Shown here piece by piece: positions 31,945-64,000 of a DNA stretch of 64,000 nt (positions within the stretch are counted from its first letter, which is position 1; every line of letters starts with the position of its first letter). This DNA comes from Macrostomum hystrix. Its lineage: Eukaryota; Animalia; Platyhelminthes. Location of the stretch: positions 3,472,001 to 3,536,000 of the forward strand of contig CATNEN010000005.1 of the NCBI GenBank assembly GCA_950097015.1, given 5' to 3'. The translations under genes and the position numbers were made by a program. The notes under the pieces were generated by a model that saw only the letters and a program-made list of their open reading frames with translations, searched no databases and was not told the origin of the DNA.

Positions 31945-34815
31945 CCGATAACCTTGACGCGATAATAAAAACCTAAAAATCTTGAATTTGAGACTGATAA
32001 GTTGTAAAAAACCAATCATGTATACATATGCAGGACGCATTTTGATTCGCGTTGAGATACTTTTTAGCAGAATTTCAAGCACATCTGAACTATCAATTTT
32101 TTCAAAGCTGTAAATAAATATTGTTTGGATTTGTACTTTTTTTCCGGAAAATTTGACAGTTGATTTTGATTTTTGAACTACGTCATCTGAAACTAACGAT
32201 CAAGGGTATTTTTTGTTTGGGTAAATTAGGAATACTAGTTCTTAAGTTGCCCAAGTTGCTTATAAACTACCAAAGTTCAAAATAAAAAGGCTGGAGAAGG
32301 TTTTCATAATTTAAATTTTTGCATGAATTCTAAACAAGCAATCACTAAAAGTCATATCACTAAACAAAAAGTGACAGTATTAGTCGAAATCGGATTTGTA
32401 ACAAACTTTGAAAAATAATTAAAGGGTTTAGTGATCGAAAGGGTTTCGTTAGTTAGGTAACGAAAGTTAATAAATAATTAACTTTTGAGGAGTTGATCGT
32501 ATAAGAACTTATCGTTGAGTGTTGCGTTCTGGCATAATGATCGTCAGTTTTATGCACATGACTAAATTGCTCATCTAGTATTCTAGATGCTCGTGGACAT
32601 AAATATAGCTGATCGATACAGGCCGCGATCGATCGACGCGTTCGTCTCTTTTAGTATAGTGACTCATCTTAAGCCGATAATTCGAGATCGCAGCCAAAAT
32701 AAAAAAAAATAGTTTCGAATTGCTTCCATGCAGCAATGCAGTTGCGCGCACGAGTTAATTATTTCACGAGTCGATCATACTAATAAAATCATCAAAAATA
32801 CATATATGAAATGTCATGAAGACTCGATATACCAGTTCTCTATTTATTCATTGCGCATCATGATTCTACCGACGAATCAGATGTGTACATGCAAATATAC
32901 GAGTATATGATCGCTTGTCATATAGAGAAGTCTAGATTTTAGAAGACAGATCACAACAAGTGTAGGGATGCATAATGTACTACCACAAAATTCAACTAAA
33001 AGCATTCTGGAGTAGATGAATATTTTAGTGCAATCCGAATAAACAAAGGATCGCATCATGCTATCAGCCGCTTGATAAAAAAGCAATACTACAAAAACTT
33101 ACTAAACCTATAATGACAGATAAATTACTTGTGGATTGCAACAAAATGTGTTACAGTTGCCATCTAAAAGTCATTACATACGAGTGTTACTTGAATAATA
33201 ATGTAATTCTTGAAGAGCGTCTCGAATAAACAATATTTTATCATGGCTGTGAAAACTACATAATTACAGGTTCACATGCCGTACGCTGGCTATATGTAGT
33301 GAAATGTTAAATATTTTTTATTAGAAGAAAGCAATAAGCACACGATGTAGATAAAGAAAGTCCAACTATATAGAGCGAAGCTTTTAAGTTGAAATCGTCG
33401 ATTACTTTATCTGTCAGCCACAATTTCTGTGTATTCTGTAACGTCACTGACGGGTCGTGAGTTCGAGTCTCGGATTTCCGTGCTACCACAGTTTTGCTTC
33501 GGCATCATGGAGAAATAGATGCAGTTGTTGTCGTCCTAAATAGACAATTAAGTGGCAATTTTTAGCGACATAAGATAGATAGAAACTACACCGGTCGAGA
33601 TAGCTCTTCAGTAGAGTAATTTCTGCCACACCCACGTACACCAACTTTCTAGCCTAACTCATGCTGCAGTACCCATCACAATTTAAATGCATGAGATCAA
33701 GCTCGAGGGAATTAAATGTAGTCGGAAGTTCTCAATGACGCTCTAACAACAGGGCCACAAGCTCCCCTGTAGCGCACTGTACTAAATATAATCATGATAT
33801 GGTACAGATCTATAACAGCCTTACATCTGTATTGTTTAAACCTGGTGCATCCGTAGTTGAAAGCTGCTGCAATGGCACCGGCACCTCCTCGGACATCGCT
33901 GCTTTCAACACCTGTACGGGAGGCCCTTGTGTTAAGGTCATCTGCGGGGGTGCAGAGTGGCATTGAGTGAGTTAACGTGTTTGCCTCTCACACCAACTGA
34001 GGTCCCTGAGCTCGATTCCGCGGTGAGACCACATTCATTTAGGGCGCAGCCGCGCAAAGAAGGCTTTGAGGGCTTGTGGTGCAATTTACGCCCTTGAGGG
34101 CCAGCCTCCAAGGCAGAGTGAAAGTGTACACTGCCTGACGATGAGAAAGTCAGGGCAGATGTACACACTTGGTGAGTGTGTGCCTGCGTACAGTATCTGT
34201 GTGCCTGTTTGATCAGGAGTAAGCGGAATGGGCAGAATTGCCTTCTCGCTGGACGCCGGTCTAGTGACACCTAATGATGTGCCATTGCCCGCAGCCCTCC
34301 TGCAAATATTTTTATATTGTTATGAGGTCATCTGCAATCTATGTACCATGAGTAACGATCGAAACTTAAAATAATAAAACGCTTTGTTTCGCAAAGCAAG
34401 ACTTGCAAAAGTTACCTTTCTTCGGTAAATGAAAGTGACGGCTGATATGACAAAAACATTCGCAAACATTAGACCCACGGTCAAGAGGACGAACATCAGA
34501 AGATCTTGATTGCGGTCTATAAATAATCAGGTAATGTTATGAAGTTCAATTCAATAATAAGCTGGTCCTCGATCACTAAACGCATACTCACCGCAATCAG
34601 ATTTAATACTGGTGCAAAGGGTTTTCACAGTCACATTTGAGAGCCATGTAACATTCGCTTGAGCAGCAGTGCATTCTAACTTAAGTTGAGCTTCCTTGTT
34701 TCCACTGCAGCAGTTAAGGCACCTCCAATGTGATGTCAGGGACTCACTGAAACCACTGCTCAAGCTTTTATTCGCTGCATCACTGGATGACACATTTAAG
34801 TTGTTTCCCATGTTG
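31945..34815 (+). repeat. Segmental duplication, copy 1 (direct copy at 61129-64000)
   Basis: Near-identical by eye, with an offset of about 29,185 bp. It includes the 3' exons of receptor gene A and its SINE. Confidence 0.95.
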
Positions 34816-36650
34816 TCAAACGCTACGCACTGATGCTCTGATTTCGGATCTGAGGTGGATGACGTGAAGCTGAATGTCACGTGACCAAATGACTCGGCGC
34901 TGCAGCTTGACGGCTTGTCAACCGCGATTCTCAAATTTTTTGGCGGATCTGTTACGTAACGAACGCGATAAATGCGTTTTATGCAAAAATAAAATTAGGC
35001 ATAGTTGAACTAGCTATGGATAACTCACACAAAACCCGCAGTCTTCGAGTACTGGATGCTTCAAGACCAGTTCCACCTGAACTGCAGGTGTAGCTCCCCC
35101 CATGGTGCAACTCCAGCTGATGAATTGTGTAAGTTCGGTTTCCACTGTCCAACGTCACATTGAAAGTTGAATGGGTGAGTCTGATTGGCTCTGAGGAAAC
35201 AACTGGGCAGAGTACATCGCATTGCACGGTCACACTGGAGCCAAGCTCTGCTGCGTTGTTGAATGCGCTCGCTGGATGAAACACGGCTGCAATTTTGGGG
35301 ACGGCTTAGTAACGGATTTTCTATTTTTAGATATAGGTATGAAATTTTATTCGCTGTATTGTTGTACCTACTTTCCAAAGTAATACTCCGATTAATCCAC
35401 ATGTCGACAAAGCTCAGGCACTGGCGCACAAATTGAGTTTCGTTTGCAACATTTCTTCTTAAAATAATTATTCTCACCTATAAAATGTACATGAGTAGAA
35501 TTTTGTCTTGACAGGTCAAATGGCTGTTGACGAGCAGTCAATATAATTATTTTCTGGAAATTTTCGTTAGGCTGCAAAAAGATTCGTGATTAGACTGATC
35601 ACAAAAAACTTGCTCAACTTCATGTTTAAGCTTTTACCCACTAGTAGGGGACTATATTAATAGTCCAGACTTTTACGTAAAGGTTGACAGCTCGAATCTC
35701 GGTCCAGGGGAGGCAGTTAGACTTCTTGCTCAAGCAAGACACGAAATTCATTAGCCAGTTGTAAAACGGGTGCCAGATTCAGCTGGGGTAGAAACTGGGT
35801 GGGTTTGAAGGCTTCCACAGTCCACGGACTGAACGAATTAACTGTGGCTTTTCCACTGGCTGCATTATCCCCATCAGAATTATGAGTGTAAATACAAAAT
35901 ACTTAGTAATTTTTTAGAAAGAATAGTATTTTCGTTCTGTCAAACTTTTATGATTACCTTATGTCTAGCGCAGTTCACAGTCAAGATTTCCCCAGAAGAT
36001 ACGCTGGTTGGCGTCCTTCCGCACAGCCTCCAGGTTCCGTTTTCCGCCCCCTGAAAGACGGAGCTGATGTTTCTCGAGTCGCAGTGGTTCGAGCCGAAGT
36101 CCAGGTCTTCCGGCGATGTCCACACCTCAATGTCTGCTGCTCGAGCGGTCAAATTGTCTCCGTAGGTCGTAAGTTCACTTGGAGTCGATGCTTTTAAGTT
36201 AAGAAAAAATATCTGTATTAAAAAAGCAACTTGGGCGTTTTATATGGCAGGATAAAAATCACAGGAAGAGTAAGTGCTCACTTCTGACTCTGATGGACAC
36301 AGGGCTGATGCTCTCCTGCTGTCTCAGTTTTATCACAAACCAGTGGAATCCGGCATCAGCGCTTTGCAGACCTACCTTGGAGTGAAGAAATGGCCAGTTG
36401 CCAACTTCATCAGCTGAGCGACTCCAGAAGCAAGTGCTCGGTGGTTGATCGAAGCTGGATGACTGCCATGATGCTTCAATGGTGCTCTTTCTGATTGGAA
36501 GCATACCTGTTTGAAGCAATTGGGTTAACAAACAATGGAAAGCATTATAGATACATAAATCCAGTATTGGAAAACCTGACCGTCCCCTCGAATCAGAATG
36601 GCGAATCCAAGAAAAGCCAGGGTGACACGCAACACAGCCAGATGGTTCAT
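33407..36650 (-). CDS. Receptor gene A: SP + F-type-lectin/F5-8C-like + Ig + Ig-like + TM + tail with YFSM and ITSM-type TEYTEI, about 531 aa
   Basis: Exons 36650-36581, 36506-36282, 36190-35958, 35477-35372, 35286-35029, 34948-34592, 34516-34416 (TM), 33941-33825 and 33535-33407 join in frame. The Ig motif is HGGSYTC. Splicing into the tail exons depends on acceptor choice around a SINE (see findings). Confidence 0.75.
33946..34322 (+). mobile_element. Full-length tRNA-derived SINE with a target-site duplication, antisense in an intron of gene A
   Basis: It has an A-box-like agtggcattgagtg, a B-box-like ctgagctcgattcc, a 3' stem (complete as ggctgcggg/cccgcagcc in the 63-kb copy) and an AT-rich tail. 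It is flanked by aggtcatctgc at 33935-33945 and 34325-34335; the duplication is 13 bp in the 63-kb copy. Confidence 0.85.
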
Positions 36651-37769
36651 GATTTCTATTCAGTTGCACAAGGCTTTCTGGGTGAAAACTTTTATAATTC
36701 TAGATTAACTTGTATACACATATTTCTAAATTTGCGTTTCACGTCTCAATTAGGAAATTGTTTGCATGCAGCATTGATTTTACAACTCATTTTAGATTTG
36801 CTAGATATTTATGTCGTCAAGATGACTTGCATTTTCGAAAGGCGACAATATGCCATTGACAAGCTAAATTTAGGACGAAACACCACAAATGCTTTTCAAA
36901 GGCCGCTACATATGCAAATCAAACGTGCATTTTCTGTAAAGAGTTAGAAAGTTTGACTCGACAAGAAGATAAAATAAAATCAGGTTTCAGTAGGATCCAG
37001 GATGTGCTACTTGTTTCGCATCCAGAATATTCTAATAGTGGCCTGTGGGAGGGACAACAGCAATATTCAACTCTGGTGCCGTTCAGCACCATCGTCGCCA
37101 GTCAATTAAGGGCCGTGGTTCTCGCACAGCATGCTCAGAAGCCCCTCTCAAGCTCAATTGCAGTTTCTGTTTCTCCCGTCTCCGCTTCCTCCAGGGCCAG
37201 ATATAGCAGGGCAGCTGTGTCCCTTTTACCAGTCCGCCAGCGAAAAGGCGGAACGTTCAGTTTACCTGCCACTGCCCAGTCTCTCCGAGGCACGGCTAGA
37301 TCATCTTGGGCCAACGGGCTCTCCGACTTTTGCAGGCCCGACAGCATCCAGCTTCGTGCGCGCACTGGAGGAGGCAAGACCGATGTGTCCCCTGAGCAAT
37401 ATCACCTCCTCACTGGAGGTCGTCTGGTTGCTCGGAGCTAGAGGAACAGGTACGTGGTCCTGCTGATGCACCCTGCCGCTAAGTCAAGTACTCGTCTTGC
37501 AAGGTGCTACTTTCTTTAGCAAGGTGGAGATGAAGCCTCTCTTTTAAAGAGTCCAAGCTTAAAGTCCAAGACATTCTAACCTTGCACTGACTTGTTTGCA
37601 AGACAAGTAACTCTAAACGCTATCGATCATATCTTGAAGCAAGTGCTTGAATCGGATTTTTACTTTTCTATTGTGCTTTTTAAGCATAATAGATGCATTT
37701 TTTTCAGAATTGCGAACATGTAGTGAACACAGATCGGCCTTTTTAGATCGATGACCATGAACTTCCTCC

Positions 37770-40187: not shown

Positions 40188-43038
40188 ATGGCTGCAGCCC
40201 AGGAATGCATTTTGCTGGCCCTCCTAGCTGGACTGTGTGCGGCTGACAGCAGTCAATGTGAGTTGCAGTCCATGGACATTCTTGTCCGATTGAGCACCAG
40301 TCCGTAGGTTGTCTCCCCTAACATGATTCTAAACTTATTTTCGTTTCAGGCACTCTCAACATCACCAAAGATTCCATCGCTGACTCGTGGCAGTCGTCCA
40401 GCTTTATTGATCACCATAAAGTTGCGCTGTGCTTTAAAAACCAGTCCACAGAGACACATTCCCAGCATTTCTACAGATTCTTCCACTCGAAAGTCAGTAA
40501 GAATGACTCAGATGCAGGCTATCACTGGTTTGTGATCAACCTGAAGAGGCCTGAGCTGATCAGCTCTGTGGGCATCAGTGCCAGAGCAGGTGAGCGATTC
40601 AGTTAATTTACAATCAAGAGCTACTGAATACCTGCTCCTAGCGACTCTCTTCAAGCTCTTGTTTGCAGCTCAAAAGTAGAAAATAATTGACATTGCAGAA
40701 GCAGATAAAGTTCCCATCGCTAAATTAAACCCCAGAGCAGCAGACATTGAGATCTGGACTTCTCAAACAGACGTGGATTTTGGACATGAGCACTGCGACT
40801 CAAAGAACATCAGCTCTACTTTCATTAGAGGAGAGAGCTCAGGTATCTGGAAGCTGTGCGGCAGGACGCCCTCAAATGTTTCTGCAGGACAAGAATTGAG
40901 CATTCCCTGCGTCAGGCAACAGGTGAGGCCATCAGGTGACTGATGGTTCATAATTCATGAGCAACCTTGCAGGTTTAATTAGGCGAGTATAATGCAAGCC
41001 AATATTCTGTATCAGCAATGCAGCTTAGGGTTTCTCTGGAGAAATATCCACATATATTTTATTTTAGTAGATTTGCAAACAAAATGACTAAAGATCGAGG
41101 CATAAACAGCAAGCAAAAACACAAATGTTGACTGTAATTTAGCATGGAGAATGTGGGTCACATGCTTTAGGGACAAATTTCTGAAACCACAAAAAGAGAC
41201 ACATTTTATTCCGCTTCTATTTCACCTAATTTAACAGTGCTGACATAACCAGAAACTGTATGCGGTTTTCAGGTCCAAATGATTCTGCTGAGAAAATACG
41301 TCGCAAACGTTGCTGATGCAGAAAACCAGTGCATGAACTTTATTGGTATGTGGATTCATAAATTTGAAATACAAGGTGAGTTTGCCGAACGGCTTTTGTT
41401 ACTACAACAGTACATCCACCGATACTATATCTCTTATCCACCTATATTAAATCCCTACGTATTCTAATGCTCGAAAATGAACATAATTGCTGCCAAGGCA
41501 GGATGCTTATAGAATAATCTTTTAAATAATTACTCCCCAAAAGCAACAGACCGATAATTTAAACTATTTCTTGTTCAATTCTGTCGAGCAAAGAAACTGT
41601 GCAAACTGATGTCATCGTCACGGTATGGAGAGAACGCCTTCTTCTTGTTGGATTTTCTGTTTTAAGTTACATTAGAAGTAGTAAGCTATAGTCTACCTCG
41701 CTAACCAAACCCCAGCTAGCACATAGGTAGCATTTTTGTGTTGAAATTGTGTTGAAATGTGTTGAAATTTGTGCTGAGAATTTTGTAAATCTTGGATAGC
41801 AGTTACTAAAAAAACTAAAAATAACAACAGCAAATCTATTTTGCGAATCTCTCCGGATAAAAATATAGAAAACATTGAGTCAATCGTTTCTTAAAACGTT
41901 TAGCTACAATTGAGCCATCCGATGAAGTTGTGAGAAACTCAAACGTCACAGTGAGCTGTCGGGTCCAGGTGTGCCACGAAGCACCTGTCGATCTGCCACC
42001 TGTTATTCTGACTCTCGCAAAGTCCAACGGAGATGAAAACACGATTAGCACCTTTCGCACTTCTGGCAACTCGAGTGCCAGCAGCGTGTCAGAATCCATT
42101 CAAAATGTGAACGAAAGTCACGCTGGCAACTACTCATGCAGAGTGGGTGACGAGGTCCTCAGCTCCCGACTGCTCAAAGTCTACTGTGAGTATACAAGAA
42201 GCCCGCAAAAGTGCCATTTCACAAGAGCACACAGCAATGTCTGCAGTCTCAAAAACTCAACAATCCCTGTTCTCAGATCCGCCAAGCAACCTGAGCATCT
42301 ACCGATCAAATGACACCTGTGCCACTGAGCCATCATATTGGAATTTCATCTTCGAGTCAACGCAGTCAGATCCACGTCCTCTGCACAAATGCTTTCTCAG
42401 AGACCACCAAGACAAAATAGCCACAGTAACAATGGCATTGAGTGTCACGGAATTGGATGGCAAATTCAGGTCGATTTGGAAATGCGAAAACTGTCTGACT
42501 GTGAATGTGACATGCACAGCACATTGGAATGATGATAAACTCTCATGGAGCGTCAGCACCACAGCGAGTCATTCTTGTCCTTTGACAACGGACTCTACCA
42601 TTCGGACTGAGGCACCTCATGTTGGCTCCAAGAGCACGGAGAAATATTCTCATGCTGAAACCATTACAATGGCAGACAGGCAGTCAAGCACTTCCCCAGC
42701 TACACCAGTTACCGCAGAACCAGCTGTTAAGAGCTCTTTTAAACCGGTGCTGTTGGCGATCGCAGTTGGACTCGTTGTTATCGGTACTTGGCTCGCAGTC
42801 ATACTCAGCAAGGTAAATATAATGTTGAGGAATTGAAATATCAAAAGTGAAACAATCCGTCATTGCTCCAACTGTCTGTTCTATGCAGCGATTCGCCTCG
42901 AGATCTCGCGACAGGTCACAGGAGGCAGGGATGGCTTCGCCACTGGAACGGCTCAGAGAGACGACAATCAATTGGAGTAAATTTCGTGTAGCAAATTGGA
43001 ATAAAAACAGGGATAATGTGGAACTCTTGATTGAGTAG
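40188..43038 (+). CDS. Receptor gene B: SP + lectin-like + Ig + Ig-like + Ser/Thr stalk + TM + Tyr-free tail, about 534 aa
   Basis: Exons 40188-40257, 40350-40589, 40699-40922, 41273-41375, 41904-42185, 42277-42812 and 42889-43038 join in frame with canonical sites. The Ig motif is HAGNYSC and the TM is VLLAIAVGLVVIGTWLAVIL. Confidence 0.85.
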
Positions 43039-43745: not shown

Positions 43746-43784
43746 GCAGTGGTCCTAGCTGAAGACCCAGTCAGCCTGTGATTT

Positions 43785-44134
43785 TCACACCTCAATGTCG
43801 GCTGCTCGAGCGGCCAAATCGTCTCGGAATTTTCTGCTGTCATCTGTACAAAAGGCTTTCACAATTTTCAAAATATTCACAATTAAGGCAGAATAAGTGC
43901 TCACTTCTCGCCGTGATGGACACTGAGCTGATGCTCTCCTGCTGTCTCAGTTTGATCACAAGCCAGTGGAATCCGGCATCAGCGCTTTGGGTGCCTTGAA
44001 TTAGTGAAGAAATTTCGAGGTGCCAACATGATTAGCTGAGCCACTCTAGAGGCAAGCACGATACGTTGAATGATACATATAGCTGGACGACTGCCACGAT
44101 GCTTCGATGTTGCTCTTGCGTATGAAAATATTAC
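43785..44134 (-). pseudogene. Receptor family pseudogene F (lectin exon 2 and the start of exon 3 only)
   Basis: It translates as IEASWQSSSY...AC L* ... FLH*, with in-frame stops and a frameshift. Exon 3 breaks off after AARAADIEV. Confidence 0.85.
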
Positions 44135-48319: not shown

Positions 48320-51026
48320 CTAAGCTTCGATGTAGATGCTTGCTCGAGATGGTCGAGCTGCCGACATCTTGATGGCTTGCTGGCGCTCAACAATGGCCAG
48401 CTGCCTCTGAAACAGTTGAGCACTGATTTATCAAAGCCAGATTTCATAAAAAGTTTGTCAGGTAAAGCTGCTACCTTTGTTTTCACCAGATAACCGCAAA
48501 CGCTCAAGAGTGCCGCGGTGAGAACAGCAATGAGCAACCAAGGAAGCCAGATCACTGAGCACACTTGCTTTGGCTGCATGTCGGATTTCGTTGCAGCTGA
48601 AATCACAGAGCAGCGAGCATCAAATTTCATTGCGACTGATTTTCTACAAAAGCTTAAACTCTTCTTACACTTCTGTTTCCAGTCGATGCTTGCGTGAGTT
48701 GAGAACAGCAGTCGAGACTGGCTCACTTCATCAAACTGATGAGCTGAGCAGTTTGCAGTCAGCCTGTCAACATAGGAGCACTTCTCACAGACCCACACAG
48801 AGGTCAGTGACTGTGAGCTGGTCATACTCGAGTTTCCAAGTCTTCGCAGAGTGAGCAGTCTGAGACTCGAGTCGGTAGCAATGCACTCATGCTCAGGAGT
48901 AGGCTCTGACACTGACGACTCAAAAGTTATTGCGAATCGAGCTCGAGACCCCACACTGAGACTGTGCTCATCAACGGAGATCGACAGATGTCTCGGAGGA
49001 TCTGCAATGTGCACTTTTATGAGTGAGTGTTGGATAGTTTGATGGGCTCATTGGTAACGAGCCACTCACGGAGTACTCGCAGGGTCTGGCTGCTGAGCAC
49101 CTCATCGCCTAGGCTGCAGATGTAGTTGCCTGCATCAGACAGCTGCACCTGCTCAATCAGGTGAGCTTGCAATCCGGTGGAGAGTGTCAGAGGGGAGTTT
49201 TCACGAGTCAGTCTGACCATTTTGATCGTCTCATTGTTCTGTATGCAATCGACATGGCATCTGACGGTGACTTGTGAGTTTTGAATCGCCGAATTCTTTG
49301 ATATATTCGCTATTGATGAAATTCGGAATTAGGTATGAAAAACATTGTAAACGGTAAGAAGGTCACATGGAGTATTTCAAACTCCAACATTTTGTCTGTA
49401 TCTCCTAAATTATTCAACCATTCGCCATGAAAGTCCTTAACCCGGGCTAAAACTTTTAGCTCTATCCGATTAAACAACTTCCAGAATCACAAAACGTCAG
49501 CATCGTCGAGATATTTAAGAATTCTCGTCGGGGTGTCTACTATTGTGAGGCTACTATTGTGAGGCTACTATTGTGAGGCTACTATTGTGAGGCTACTATT
49601 GTGAGGCTACTATTGTGAGGCTACTATCGTTAGTCTATTATTGTGAGGCTACTATTGTGAGGCTACTATTGTGAGGCTACTATTGTGAGGCTACTATTGT
49701 GAGGCTACTATTGTGAGGCTACTATTGTGAGGCTACTATTGTGAGGCTACTATTGTGAGGCTACTATTGTGAGGCTACTATTGTGAGGCTACTATTGTGA
49801 GGCTACTATTGTGAGGCTACTATTGTGAGGCTACTATTGTGAGGCTACTATTGTGAGGCTACTATTGTGAGGCTACTATTGTGAGGCTACTATTGTGAGG
49901 CTACTATTGTGAGGCTACTGTTGTTGACTATTTTGCATTGATTGATATTGTTATTTTTTTACTTTTGAACCGCTAGAGTTCGCCAAGAGGTTTATACAGA
50001 ACAATGTCACTAGTCCATGTCACCTAGGACTTCGACATGCATCGCTGAATATCTCGACTATGCTAGCTCAGACGGCTCTAAAAGCTAGTTCATCGTAAAA
50101 GATGGAAAACTTCATTCATACGTGATATCTTACTGAATGCAGCAAATCTTCTGAGCCACATGTCGACGAAAGCCATCGCTCGTCTAATGGGCTTTGTTTC
50201 TGTCGCGACAAATCTCCTTAATAAAACAATGCGGACCTGAAAAGGGTCTCACATTCCGTACTGATGTGGAACGGACACGAATTTTTACCTTAATTTTTGC
50301 GTCTGCAATTACCTTATGTGTAGTGCAGTTTACAGTCAAAGTTTGTCCGTATGAAACTTTGTTTGGCGTCCTTCCGCACAGCCTCCAGGTTCCGCTTTTC
50401 GCCCCCTGAAAGACGGAGCTGATGTTTCTCAAGTCGCAGTGGTTCGAGCCGAAGTCCAGGTCTTCCGGCGATGTCCACACCTCAATGTCTGCTGCTTGAG
50501 CGGTCAAATTGTCTCCGTAGGTCGTAAGTTCATATTGACTCAAAGCTTTTAAGTTGAGAAAAAATATCTGTATTAAATAAGCAACTTGGGCGTTTTATAT
50601 GGCAGGATAAAATCACAGGAAGAGTAAGTGCTCACTTCTGACTCTGATGGACACAGAGCTGATGCTCTCCTGCTGTCTCAGTTTTATCACAAACCAGTGG
50701 AATCCGGCAACAGCGCTCTTGGTGCCCTCCTTGGAGTGAGCAAATCGCCAGGAGCCAACTTCATCAGCTAAGCGACTCCAGAAGCAAGTGCTCGGTGGTG
50801 GATCGAAGCTGGATGACTGCCATGATGCTTCAATGGTGCTCTTTCTGATTGGAAGCATACCTGTTTGAAGCAATTGGGTTAACAAACAATGGAAAGCATT
50901 ATAGATACATAAATCCAGTATTGGGAAACCTGACCGTGCCAGCTCACATCTGTCTGAGTCCCCTCGACTCAGAATGGCGAATCCAAGAAAAGCCAGGGTG
51001 ACACGCAACGCAGCCAGATGGTTCAT
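48320..51026 (-). CDS. Receptor gene C: SP + lectin-like + Ig + Ig-like + TM + short tail ending SIYIEA, about 497 aa
   Basis: Exons 51026-50948, 50860-50636, 50545-50313, 50236-50134, 49309-49070, 49001-48475 and 48406-48320 join in frame. The Ig motif is DAGNYIC. If the last intron is retained, the ORF reads to 48304 with a Tyr-free tail. Confidence 0.8.
49545..49920. repeat. Intronic minisatellite, 14-bp unit (ctactattgtgagg)
   Basis: Near-perfect periodicity in intron 4 of gene C. Confidence 0.97.
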
Positions 51027-51434
51027 GATTTCTATCAATTGATCAAAGCTTTGTCGAGCTTTCATATCGAAATACTTCTAAACTTTAAGATCGCAGTTTA
51101 TATGTGAATCTGCTGTTGGCATGTTGACTGAATAGTTGTTCCTGTAAATAGTGCATTCTTAGAGCTTAATTTAAACTGGGTCCGTTATTCTAAGAGTTAT
51201 TTGTGTGGGTCTCGGAACTAAAGATAACGAATCATTTTCCAGAAGGAAATTTCCTGATGCTATTCAGTTGAATTTTATTTGGTAACTGTGTGGGGACAAG
51301 TCAGAATACTGTGTAGAATTATTCACTTTTATTTGCAAACAAAAGTTGCATTTTTTTATAAAGAGTTGGCAAGCTTCACTCGGAAGGTGCACGAATAAGA
51401 ATTTAAAGAAAGAGATGAACAGTTCAATATTTAC

Positions 51435-52221
51435 CTTGCTGAGTATGACTGCGAGCCAAGTACCGATAACAACGAGTCCTACTGCGATCGCCAACATCAC
51501 CGGTTTAAAAGAGCTCTTAACAGCTGGTTCTGCGCTAACTGGTGTAGTTGGGGAAGTGCTTGACTGCCTGTCTGCCATTGTAATGGTTTCAGCATGAGAA
51601 TATTTATCCGTGCTCTTGGAGCCAACTTCAGCTGCCTCAGTCGGAATGGTAGAGTCCGTTGTCAAAGGACAAGAATGACTCGCTGTGGTGCTGTAGGTCC
51701 ATGAGAGTTTATCATCATTCCAATGTGCTTTTCGTCTCGGTGGTCTCTCAGAAAGCATTTGTGCAGAGGATGAGGATCTGACTACGTTGACTCGAAGGTG
51801 AAATTCCGTCCGACGGCTTAGTGGCGCAGTTGTCATTTGAGTAGATGCTCAGGTTGCTTGGCGATCTGAGAACAGGGATTGTTGAGTTTGTGAGACTGCA
51901 GACATTGCTGTGTGCTCTTGTGAAATGGCACTTATGTGGGCTTCATTGTATACTCACAGTAGACTTTGAGCAGTCGGGAGCTGAGGACCTCGTCACCCAC
52001 TCTGCATGAGTAGCTGCCAGCGTGACTTTCGTTCACATTTTGAATGGATTCTGACACGCTGCTGGCACTCGAGTTGCCAGAAGTGCGAAAGGTGCTTGCG
52101 TTCTTGTTTCCGTTGGGCTTTGCGAGAGTCAGAATAAAACTTTCTTCATGGCACACTGCGGCCAAACAGCTCACTGTGACGTTTGAGTTTCTCACAACTT
52201 CATCGGATGGCTCAATCGTAG
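51435..52221 (-). pseudogene. Receptor family pseudogene E (Ig exon plus a deleted Ig2/stalk/TM exon; no lectin exons visible)
   Basis: The Ig exon at 52221-51958 is intact (264 nt, as in gene D). The next exon, from 51865, has two 1-bp deletions and lacks about 100 bp relative to genes B and D. Confidence 0.85.
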
Positions 52222-52764
52222 CTAATATTTTTAAGGAACGAGTGACTCAAGCTGCGATAATCGATCGCACTAAAAGCCTAAATTTCTTTACTTTTTGATA
52301 AAGGAATTTTCCAAGTAAAATTTTATTTGTAGGAGTTCCTAGTAAAAGTAGTATGAAATGAGACTTGTCGACATTTTAAAGTTATAACAATGGTGCATTT
52401 CTAGAAACGCAGATACGGTTGCGTCTGATGGAAATACAGCGAGAAGAACAGAAGTGATGACAGGATCAACTTGACGACTCGAAAAGTTTAAAACCAAAAT
52501 TAGCACTCCTTTGTTGCAGGGTAATTGTAGTGGGTAGTGGGTGGCACAATATCGAGAAAACTTTCCTGCATAAACTACCATCTGCTTTTACAGGGACACA
52601 ATGCCTATGATATTTAAAAGACATTTAAATTATACCTGAATATATTTAGCCCGCCTGATCTGAATTCTAAACGAAGATTATTTTTAAACCAGCTAAGCTG
52701 AATCTTGATTTAAAAATGATTTCCGTTTCTAGACATGGTTTGACAGAATGCGTTGTTTAGCTAA

Positions 52765-54214: not shown

Positions 54215-57200
54215 ATGGCTGCAGCACAGGAATGCATTTTGCTGGCAGCGGCCCTTCTAGCTGGACTGTGTGCGGCTGACAGCAGTCAATGTGAGTTGCA
54301 GTCCATGGACAATCTTGACCGATTAAGAATCAGTCAGTAGTGCGTCCACTTCAATTGATTCTAAACTTATTTTTGTTTCAGGCACTCTCAACATCACCAA
54401 AGATTCCATCGCTGAATCGTGGCAGTCGTCCAGCTTTCTAGATAACAATCAGGCAACACTGTGCTTTAAAAACCAGTCAACTGAGAATGATTCCCAGCAT
54501 TTCTACAGATTCTTCCACTCCAAAGCCAGTAAGAATGACGCTGATGCAGGCTATCACTGGTTTGTGATCAAACTGAAGAGGCCTGAGCTGATCAGCTCTG
54601 TGGGCATCAGGGCCAGGTCAGGTGAGCGATTCAGTTAATTTACAATCAAGAGCTACTGAATACCTGCTCCTAACGATTCCCTTCAAGCTCTTGTTTGCAG
54701 CTCAAAATAAATAACTAACTGACATTGTAGAATGGATGGGAGTTTCCATCGATTATTTAAACCCCAGAGCAGCAGACATTGAGATCTGGACTTCTCAAAC
54801 AGACGTCGATTTTGGACATGAGCACTGCGACTCAAAGAACATCAGCTCTACTTTCATTAGAGGAGAGAGCTCAGGTATCTGGAAGCAGTGTGGCAGGACG
54901 CCCTCAAATGTTTCTGCAGGACAAGGCTTGAGCGTGCCCTGCGTCAGGCGACAGGTGAGGCGATCAGGTGACTGCTGGTTCATAATTTATGAGCAATATA
55001 AAATTTTGGGTTGAAGCTTAGTCGTTAAAGCGTCAAACCCACACCTTGAAGCGAGTTTCTGGGTGTTCTATTCCTGACTTCATTGGAACAATTTGAGTTG
55101 TTTAGCAAGACACTTACCTCTGCATTGCTTCAGTTCATCCAGCTGTTAAATGTGTACCAGAATCAGCTGGGGTAATTGAAGGTGGGTGTGGCGTCCCCCC
55201 AGTCCATGGACTGAACAGCCAAACGCAGCCTTCAGATGCTCCCCCAATAGCTGCCGCTGTGCTGTCGGCTGCACATCTGACCCAATGGGGCAGGTGTAAT
55301 CAGCCAACTGTTACTCAAGAGCAAACGGTTGACAGCTCAGTGAATCGAACTCAGTTTACTCAGTGAAGTAAACAAAAATTTGCTAGGAAAAGGAATACCT
55401 TAGGATTGTTTTCCCGAGAAATGATCTACATTAGCACAGTATCTATTTTGTGGCACACATCGACTAAAGTTTGAGGCAAATAGAAGCTATAGGAAGGCAT
55501 CAAGGTCGATTTTACTTGAGCCGAGAATGTGAGTCACAGACTTTAGGGACAAGATTCTTTTGCATCTGTTGAAATTTCTCTAAAATTAATAACTATATTA
55601 TTTCTCTAAATCCAAACATAACGAGAAACTATACGCGGCTTTCAGGTCCGAATGATTCTGTTGAGAAAATACGTCGCAAACGTTTCTGATTCACAAAACC
55701 AGTGCATGAGCTTCATTAGCATGTGGATTCGAAAAAGTGTATTAGAAGGTGAGTTTGTCCAACGATTTGTCATTAAAATTATTCCTAATAAAAAAGCAAG
55801 CATGTGATGAGGCCTATAGAGTCAAATCATTCAATAAATGTTGGTCGCGGTATTGAGAACGCTTGAAATTAGACTAACAGTTCTACTTTGCTAACTCTCG
55901 CTATGGTGGGTGACATGCTTGTGCTGAAGGAGAGCAGACTAGGAGAGCACATACTGAAATAAAGGAGCAAAAGCACATACTCAAAGAAAATGAAAAGCAC
56001 ACTTAACTATCTCGAAAATCACGTATGCTTAGAAAATCTGATATGCTTAGAAAATCTGATATGCTTAGAAAATCTGATATGTTTAGAAAAAAACATAGAC
56101 TCACTCTTTTCTTTTGGCGTCTAGCTACAATTGAGCCATCTAATGAAGTTGTGAGAAACTCAAAAGTCACAGTGAGCTGTTGGGCCGCGGTGTGCCATGA
56201 AGACAGTTTTATTCTGACTCTCGCAAAGCCCAACGGAAACAAGAACGCAAGCACCATTCGCACTTATGGCATCTGGAGTGCAAGCAGCGTGTCAGAATCC
56301 ATTCAAAATGTGAACGAAAGTCACGCTGGTAACTACTTATGCAGAGTGGGTGACGAGGTCCTCAGCTCCCGACTGCTCAAAGTCTACTGTGAGTATACAA
56401 TGAAGCCCACATAAGTGCCATTTCACAAGAGCACACAGCAATGTCTGCAGTCTCACAAACTCAACAATCCCCGATCTCAGATCCGCCAAGCAACCTGAGC
56501 ATCTACTCAAATGACAACTGCGCCACTAAGCCGTCGGAACGGAATTTCACCTTCGAGTCAACGCAGTCAGATCCACATCCTCTGCATAAATGCTTTCTGA
56601 GAGACCACCGAGACGAAAATGCCACAGTAACAATGGCATCGAGTGTCACAGAATTGGACAGCAAATTCAGGTCGATTTGGAAATGCGAAAACTGTCTGAC
56701 TGTGAATGTGATATGCACAGCACATTGGAATGATGATAAACTGTCATGGAGCTACAGCACCACAGAAAGTCTGTCTTGCCCTATGAACTCAGTCTCATTC
56801 AGTGAGTTGGAGATTATGTCTGCAGTACTTGTCACAGTTTCTATAGTACATAATGATCTAGGCGGACTCTGAACTTTGAAATGTTACTGATTCACTTTGT
56901 CCCCTCCCAGTTGGGCTTGACTGGAGTCTTGACTTCACATAAAACATGATTTCAGGTGCCCTTCGATGTGCTTATCAGATGCAAGCCTCCATTTGGATTC
57001 TGTTGGCAGTCATTTCGGTCCTGACATTGCTCCTGATTGTAGTCAGCATCTGTCTGTGGAGAACTCGGGTAATGCACTCCAGGATGCTAGCTGTGCTCAC
57101 AATTCATGCTCCATTCAGTCTGACAGCAACTGGTTCGTGTAAATAAAAAACATTCACATTTCAGAGCCGAATAAAAGTGTTGCTCGAAGATCAACAAAAT

Positions 57201-62592: not shown

Positions 62593-64000
62593 TTATCTGT
62601 CAGCCACAATTTCTGTGTATACTGTAACGTCACTGACGGGTCGTGAGTTCGAGTCTCGGATTTCCGTGCTACCACAGTTTTGCTTCGGCATCATGGAGAA
62701 ATAGATGCAGTTGTTGTCGTCCTAAATAGACAATTAAGTGGCAATTTTTAGCGACATAAGATAGATAGAAACTACACCGGTCGAGATAGCTCTTCAGTAG
62801 AGTAATTTCTGCCACACCCACGTACACCAACTTTCTAGCCTAACTCATGCTGCAGTACCCATCACAATTTAAATGCATGAGATCAAGCTCGAGGGAATTA
62901 AATGTAGTCGGAAGTTCTCAATGACGCTCTAACAACAGGGCCACAAGCTCCCCTGTAGCGCACTGTACTAAATATAAACATGATATGGTACAGATCTATA
63001 ACAGCCTTACATCTGTATTGTTTAAACCTGGTGCATCCGTAGTTGAAAGCTGCTGCAATGGCACCGGCACCTCCTCGGACATCGCTGCTTTCAACACCTG
63101 TACGGGAGGCCCTTGTGTTGAGGTCATCTGCGGGGGTGCAGAGTGGCATTGAGTGAGTTAACGTGTTTGCCTCTCACACCAACTGAGGTCCCTGAGCTCG
63201 ATTCCGCGGTGAGACCACATTCATTTAGGGCGCAGCCGCGCAAAGAAGGCTTTGAGGGCTTGTGGTGCAATTTACGCCCTTGAGGGCCAGCCTCCAAGGC
63301 ACAGTGAAAGTGTACACTGCCTGACGATGAGAAAGTCAGGGCAGATGTACACACTTGGTGAGTGTGTGCCTGCGTACAGTATCTGTGTGCCTGTTTGATC
63401 AGGAGTAAGCGGAATGGGCAAAATTGCCTTCTCGCTGGCTGCGGGTCTAGTGACACCAAATGATGTGCCATTGCCCGCAGCCCTCCTGCAAATATTTTTA
63501 TATTGTTATGAGGTCATCTGCAGTCTATGTACCATGAGTAACGATCGAAACTTAAAATAATAAAACGCTTTGTTTGCAAAGCAAGACTTGCAAAAGTTAC
63601 CTTTCTTCGGTAAATGAAAGTGACGGCTGATATGACAAAAACATTCGCAAACATTAGACCCACGGCCAAGAGGACGAACATCAGAAGATCTTGATTGCGG
63701 TCTATAAATAATCAGGTAATGTTATGAAGTTCAATTCAATAATAAGCTGGTCCTCGATCACTAAACGCATACTCACCGCAATCAGATTTAATACTTGTGC
63801 AAAGGGTTTTCACAGTCACATTTGAGAGCCATGTAACATTCGCTTGAGCAGCAGTGCATTCTAACTTAAGTTGAGCTTCCTTGTTTCCACTGCAGCAGTT
63901 AAGGCACCTCCAATGTGATGTCAGGGACTCACTGAAATCACTGCTCAAGCTTTTATTCGCTGCATCACTGGATGACACATTTAAGTTGTTTCCCATGTTG
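62593..64000 (-). CDS. Receptor gene A' (3' exons of a near-identical copy of gene A; 5' part outside the window)
   Basis: Exons >64000-63777, 63701-63601 (TM), 63127-63011 and 62721-62593. The tail ends VTVYTEIVADR. Confidence 0.75.
63132..63508 (+). mobile_element. tRNA-derived SINE with a 13-bp TSD (tgaggtcatctgc), duplicate of 33946-34322
   Basis: The TSD lies at 63119-63131 and 63509-63521. Confidence 0.88.

Follow-up and report, generated by a model that had tools for sequence, protein, structure and literature searches.

Two receptor genes and their lectin-like heads

The window analysed here, a stretch of 64,000 nucleotides (C5:3472001-3536000) within a 220-Mb, 42-contig assembly, carries two genes, A and C, on its minus strand (Table 1). 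These genes would be neighbours within a large flatworm family of membrane receptors in which a lectin-like domain is the outermost part of the protein. The start codon of gene A, at 36650, is a small correction to the original prediction, which had placed the limits of exon 2 correctly (AG/GTATGC...TCAGAA/GTGAGC). Exon 2 codes for the N-terminal half of the lectin-like domain, with the first of the conserved Args at its end. The loop between the Args (TSTPSEL...) is supplied by exon 3, as are the second of these Args (RAADIEVW) and the strands with CG..TVNC. The TSTPSEL cluster at the start of exon 3 is private to gene A. Exon 1 of this gene also has a 22-nt deletion relative to gene C and to two further copies, A2 and C2, that lie beyond the window. 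The deletion removes the usual GTGAGC donor together with the residues SDRC, and the donor that remains is a weak GTCAGG, with the phase unchanged. The SDRC lost at the junction of exon 1 and intron 1 (36581-36610) includes the Cys that precedes the lectin-like domain.

Table 1. Features of genes A and C and of their duplicate copies (positions in the window unless preceded by C5; a slash marks the exon end).
Feature	Position	Strand	Remarks
Gene A exon 1 (signal peptide)	36581..36650	-	ATG at 36650
Gene A exon 2	36282..36506	-	225 nt, phase 1 at both ends; AG acceptor, GTGAGC donor
Gene A patch, 15 codons (NWPFLHSKVGLQSAD)	36355..36399	-	end of pre-His loop, xFxHS motif and post-His loop
Gene A intron 2	36191..36281	-	2 substitutions and 1 indel versus C
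Gene A exon 3	35958..36190	-	donor CATAAG/GTAATC
Gene A exon 4 (VRIIILRR...)	35388..35477	-	predicted to complete the jelly roll; outside the A-C common block
A-C common head block	35958..36680 (C: ~50313-51052)	-	~2% background divergence, three divergent islands
Gene C	51026-50147	-	layout as gene A
Gene C exon 2	50636..50860	-	homologue of gene A exon 2
Gene C patch, 15 codons (SWRFAHSKEGTKSAV)	50709..50753	-	unique in the 220-Mb assembly
Gene C exon 3	50313..50545	-	second Arg replaced by Gln (TAQAADIEVW)
Gene C exon 4 (VRIVLLRR...)	50147..50236	-	~60% protein identity to A exon 4, peptides compared by eye
Copy A2	C5:3537128-3537875		just past the window end
Copy C2	C5:3549650-3550380		just past the window end

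The block common to genes A and C has sharp ends, one about 28 nt 5′ of the ATG and the other at the donor of exon 3, and exon 4 is excluded from it. Within exon 2, 17 of 225 nt differ between the two genes, resulting in 10 amino-acid changes and one purely silent codon. Fourteen of these differences fall inside 44 nt (36399-36356), a degree of clustering that was reached in none of 200,000 permutations, and they occupy the loops on either side of a conserved His in the lectin-like domain. The introns are nearly identical, with three substitutions and one 1-nt indel per ~165 nt (one substitution in intron 1; two substitutions and the single-base indel in intron 2). Variation is seen again at the start of exon 3, where TSTPSEL of A corresponds to TLSQYEL of C, and C has Gln at the position of the second Arg. 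Each of these features had been pointed out in the original prediction, and the dense 15-codon difference around the conserved His is confirmed as genuine.

Exons 2-4 are predicted to encode a jelly roll that resembles F-type lectins, though divergent, and in which a His and two Args are conserved. Among the copies of the family, the His is retained in 47 of 50, the first Arg in 47 of 47 and the second Arg in 44 of 45. Single exons gave no match in Pfam, and 10 of 50 exon-2 pieces weakly matched F5_F8_type_C (best E 0.032). With the curated profiles PF22633 and PF00754, full-length homologues scored 14-17 bits, below the cut-offs of ~28. A profile of the exon 2 family retrieved 19 proteins among 1.84 billion representatives, and the matches that were looked up are all from Macrostomum lignano, save one metagenome fragment and one protein of the copepod Tigriopus. 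This last protein (E 3.5e-5) bears the UniRef name fucolectin/tachylectin-4/pentraxin-1 domain protein, and its comparison with the family by hhalign yielded a probability of 64% over 111 columns. When the PDB was searched with a profile in which full-length database proteins were combined with exon pieces as separate alignment rows, only two matches were obtained. Both are F-type lectins, namely MsaFBP32 (3CQO; E 0.001, both domains) and the agglutinin of the eel (1K12; E 0.047). In alignments with these eel and bass proteins, the two Args of the family match Arg79 and Arg86.

Structural comparisons agree with this assignment. The AlphaFold model of P0008, a homologue from M. lignano with 42% identity to gene A in the exon 2 region and with loops as long as those of A and C, gives the head a pLDDT of 80-98. 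By Foldseek, the model belongs to the galactose-binding-domain-like superfamily, and in VIA-align the ranks 1-9 are all taken by F-type lectins, including 1K12, lectinolysin, SpX-1 and 3CQO. The match to 1K12 has a Z of 11.6 with 142 of 158 residues aligned, and CBM32 is within 1 Z unit. On the evidence of the model, we regard the F-type jelly-roll fold class as certain and membership in the F-type subfamily as only favoured. The family departs from the sugar-binding motif H-X24-R-X-D-X4-R/K, as its spacing is longer and there is no Asp two residues past the first Arg. Moreover, in three alignments His52 of the eel lectin falls 2-6 residues after the conserved His of the family, not on it. Because this His is present in so many copies (47/50), sugar binding by it is nevertheless plausible. 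By analogy with F-type lectin topology, the loops of the patch would lie on the ligand-binding face; in lectins of this type, the elements joined by these loops are located at the end of the barrel that has the pocket (PMC5712786).

Full-length relatives in M. lignano (P0002, P0007 and P0011) contain a signal peptide, the head, Ig-like or Cys-rich stalk modules and a transmembrane helix. At the end of their tails are ITIM/ITSM-like motifs, for example TVYLEI, SEYENSEYKLENATGIYIL and TEYTEIV.

Probable exchange among four copies of the head

Copies A2 and C2 originated by segmental duplication of the unit that extends from A to C, with a period of ~27-29 kb. Flanking sequences are common to A and A2 and to C and C2, with a divergence of 1.5-2%. 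A direct repeat that is 98.7% identical and ~29.2 kb apart (34000-34815 versus 63186-64000) corresponds to the duplication unit. There are also several inverted repeats of 95-99% identity between oppositely oriented family members (42047-42820, 51427-52224 and 56122-56483). The direct and inverted repeats of this cluster are substrates for ectopic exchange.

The version of the patch carried by gene C is private to it. In the patch, A, A2 and C2 differ from one another at no more than one position, being identical except for one base private to A, and C differs from them at 13-14 positions. C2 has the A version of the patch set within C-type flanks. The divergence between C and C2 is ~2 per 100 bp across more than 2 kb, versus 14 per 100 bp at the patch, a density with a Poisson probability of 8e-11 if the flank rate applied. 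Between A2 and C2 there are 2 differences in the 225 nt of exon 2 and 0 in 90 nt of intron 2, and these two copies have variants in common that are missing from both A and C. In the four-copy alignment, 20 sites group A with A2 and C with C2 (pattern 0011), 9 sites group A with C and A2 with C2 (pattern 0101), and the pattern 0110 is found as well, together with clusters of private sites in each of the four copies. Since such site patterns are incompatible with one another, they point to non-allelic gene conversion, as do identity tracts that are longer than chance would give.

The low intron divergence between A and C appears, from these sequences, to be due to gene conversion between the heads and not to a low neutral rate. 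Given such conversion, the near-identical introns are no neutral yardstick for the exon. Furthermore, because the patch is private to C and its A version is present in C2, the contrast between exon and introns would reflect a mosaic history and not accelerated substitution. A caution for tandem families in general is that an exon more divergent than its introns can arise from conversion mosaics and is not proof of dN/dS above 1.

On balance, it is probable that the patch of gene C is an island within a conversion mosaic, private to this gene. Exons 1-3 and the introns of A-type and C-type genes would have been homogenised by non-allelic gene conversion, giving the background divergence of ~2%. 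The patch would be an island that was spared this homogenisation, or one that was imported from a donor now gone, and it would persist only in C. After the segmental duplication, A2 and C2 may have exchanged a tract of ~300 bp or more (~36434-36117), as the site patterns suggest, and C2 would thereby have lost its C-type patch, and A2 its A-type start of exon 3. Short cassettes would likewise be exchanged between distant copies, and selection for diversity of the pre-His loop probably helps the islands to persist. An example of exchange at this scale is provided by copy D (C5:4.28 Mb), which diverges from A by 25% in exon 2, yet has an identical run of 47 nt with it over CFWSRSADEVGNWPFLHS. 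The run coincides with the loop considered here and was matched in none of 20,000 permutations. Micro-conversion within the patch loop itself is thus demonstrable.

Several observations count against the mosaic reading. One conversion tract alone cannot skip an internal island of 44 nt. In addition, polarity derived from D as an outgroup is unreliable, since this copy has an A-type loop that came through conversion, and polarisation by D was dropped for this reason. No donor of the C patch was found when either half was searched with up to 3 mismatches throughout the 220-Mb assembly, nor when 11-mers were compared among 52 loci, so import of the patch by conversion is unproven. The assembly likewise gave no donor, at up to 3 mismatches, for the private cluster at the start of exon 3 in A.

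Alternatively, the patch of C could be an artefact of assembly or haplotype, such as an allelic variant or misassembled reads in a collapsed tandem duplication. The segmental duplication is recent (~27-29 kb period, 98-99% identity) and thus prone to collapse. However, the patch lies inside C-specific flanks and keeps the reading frame, with no sign of a join in the sequence, and an allelic origin would leave a real divergent cassette still to be explained. We therefore hold an artefact to be very improbable.

Silent and replacement change in the loops around the His

For the pair of A and C, the NG86 method gives a dS of 0.086 and a dN of 0.079 in the whole of exon 2 (omega 0.92). A 17-codon patch has a pS of 0.32 and a pN of 0.26 (omega ~0.8), and the rest of exon 2 has a pS of 0.00 and a pN of 0.022. 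The original prediction had expected dN/dS above 1 in this segment, and the pair does not bear this out, in a comparison of low power. Outside the patch, silent divergence is 0 of 35 silent sites for the remainder of exon 2, and the introns differ at 3 of 166 nt. Relative to these regions, the silent excess of the patch has a Fisher P of 0.03 when only the two unambiguous silent differences are counted, and of 2e-4 with the NG86 count. Such high silent divergence implies older or foreign sequence, and not replacement-only change on a young background. The data thus show what appears, at the sequence level, to be an old divergence that has affected silent and replacement sites alike. Nevertheless, the six differences between A and C in the pre-His half of the patch are all replacements, a result that also fits recent positive selection.

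A different picture emerges from the family as a whole. At least 61 homologues of exon 2 are present in the assembly, on six contigs, and we pooled 16 phylogenetically independent close pairs with a nucleotide distance below 0.16. Exon 2 was divided into regions bounded by the invariant motifs SWQSS, CF, xFxHS and GFHW. In these pooled pairs, omega is 0.22 for the N-terminal strand, 1.35 for loop 1 (SWQSS to CF), 6.3 for loop 2, the pre-His loop (CF to xFxHS; Nd 61, Sd 3, P = 5e-5), 0.55 for the xFxHS motif, 0.89 for loop 3, the post-His loop, and 0.79 for the strands after it, so that the framework ranges from 0.2 to 0.8. Without the pair of A and C, the counts for loop 2 are Nd 58 and Sd 3, and pairs with less than 8% divergence give Nd 29 and Sd 0 (P = 4e-4). 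The changes in this loop are mainly isolated single-base replacements and occur in 13 of the 16 pairs. For the inter-Arg loop in exon 3, the pooled pairs yield an omega of 3.9, which is not significant. Single-omega maximum likelihood estimates over the whole, largely saturated tree, from a nucleotide tree and per-partition GY fits, are 0.82 for loop 2 and 0.32 for the framework, and loop 2 does not exceed 1 by this measure.

From these counts, replacement diversity in the pre-His loop is probably favoured among young paralogues. The diversifying selection that was originally proposed for the segment around the His thus finds partial support, across the family, in the pre-His loop, which makes up the first few codons of that segment, and is not supported for the patch as a whole (omega ~0.8). 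The post-His half, where most of the nucleotide differences between A and C are located, has no replacement excess family-wide.

It is conceivable, though quite improbable, that point substitutions under diversifying selection on the sugar-binding site rebuilt the loop of C after the heads had been homogenised. Such a history would account for the 10 replacement codons against a single purely silent one in exon 2, for the replacement-only change in the first, pre-His half (Nd 6, Sd 0) of the patch, for the omega of ~6 in the pre-His loop of the family, and for the absence of a donor sequence from the assembly. However, it would require 13-14 changes in 44-51 nt against a background of 2% (Poisson 8e-11), among them silent changes and a codon altered at 3 of 3 positions. 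It is also difficult to reconcile with a patch in which pS is at least as high as pN (0.32 versus 0.26) and with an omega of 0.9 in the post-His loop of the family. Finally, the Ser and Arg of gene C, which are the family-majority residues, may be old states and not new ones.

At other conserved positions, gene C has unusual residues. A Ser found in 37 of 50 copies is replaced by Leu, the Phe/Leu beside the His (Phe in 39 of 50) by Ala, and an Asp found in 44 of 50 by Val, and Gln in place of the second Arg is the sole case among 45 copies. Relaxed constraint or altered specificity of gene C is consequently a live rival to the mosaic reading. If the binding site of this gene were decaying or repurposed, radical changes around the His could accumulate under relaxed constraint and without selection for diversity. 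The unique or rare states at conserved positions (Leu, Ala, Val and Gln) would be expected in that case, as would the near-neutral omega of ~0.8-0.9. We consider this unlikely, given that exons 1-4 of gene C are open with good splice sites and that relaxation alone cannot yield a divergence of 30% in 44 nt beside codons and introns at ~2%. Moreover, functional isoforms of F-type lectins without the triad are known from the oyster bindin (PMC5712786).

The flatworm heads are similar to eel fucolectins in their predicted jelly-roll fold, in their conserved His, Arg and Arg, and in having loops around the putative pocket that vary between copies. In the eel agglutinins (AAA and eFL-1 to eFL-7), the loops around the pocket vary among isoforms of one genome and the basic triad is conserved (PMC5712786). 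However, the spacing H-X24-R-X-D-X4-R of the eel corresponds to H-X32-R-X17-R in gene A, and the flatworm head is without the vicinal Cys pair that eel fucolectins have between the Args. In addition, the eel fucolectin is a serum lectin, whereas the flatworm domain would be the head of a membrane-bound receptor whose stalk is Ig-like and whose tail carries Tyr motifs. Sperm bindin of the oyster Crassostrea gigas offers another comparison, as its F-lectins experience positive selection at pocket sites and recombination in an intra-domain intron, and some isoforms replace the His-Arg-Arg triad by, for example, Val, Gln and Lys (PMC5712786). Gene C, with Gln at the second Arg, is like these triad-less bindins. 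Nevertheless, the diversity of oyster bindin is allelic, concerns few genes and relates to gamete recognition, whereas that of the flatworm lies between tandem paralogues among more than 60 receptor genes. Unlike in oyster bindin, omega above 1 is limited in the flatworm to the pre-His loop in pooled recent pairs.

Families such as KIR, Ly49 and MHC have framework exons and introns that are homogenised by non-allelic conversion, with short ligand-contact segments remaining divergent, and similar heads are found there on different signalling tails. The flatworm family has an unrelated type of domain, a lectin-like jelly roll, and belongs to an unrelated phylum. It is possible, but doubtful, that a Macrostomum-specific family of more than 60 receptors varies its sugar-pocket loops by cassette exchange and positive selection and is an invertebrate counterpart of immune receptors of the variable or paired type, gene C being a variant that has lost the canonical Arg. 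If true, this counterpart would be independent in origin. Loop variability, positive selection with recombination, and loss of the triad are already known in F-type lectins, and the flatworm receptors would add a further case. The innate recognition molecules of flatworms are poorly known, and a lineage-restricted family of this kind offers candidates for the recognition of self and non-self or of microbes, in a genus that is tractable in the laboratory.

Other features of the receptor cluster

The pre-His loop also varies between other copies. THSV and TESK are alternative tetrapeptides of this loop that turn up repeatedly among different close pairs of B-type genes (loci L008, L009, L010 and L011, at C5:4.25-4.26 Mb and 3.56-3.63 Mb). 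This recurrence is the pattern that would be expected if short cassettes were shuffled between paralogues. In E-type copies of the lectin head, found at 43746-44130 on the minus strand and also at L004 and L005, exon 2 is broken by a frameshift and in-frame stops, and exon 3 contains a stop as well. These copies are pseudogenes inside the cluster, and they are potential but unproven donors for conversion.

The start of exon 3 in C2 (L002:1340-1365; C5:3549839-3549864) has a private cluster of its own, GACCGCTCGGATACC, with an insertion of 3 nt. The cluster repeats GACCGCTCG, which lies ~30 nt downstream in the same exon, and has the appearance of a mutation by local template switching within the inter-Arg loop. 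Elsewhere in the window, a minisatellite with a 23-bp unit extends from 4009 to ~7000. It comprises at least 127 register-shifted copies at ~96% identity and has a strongly skewed base composition.
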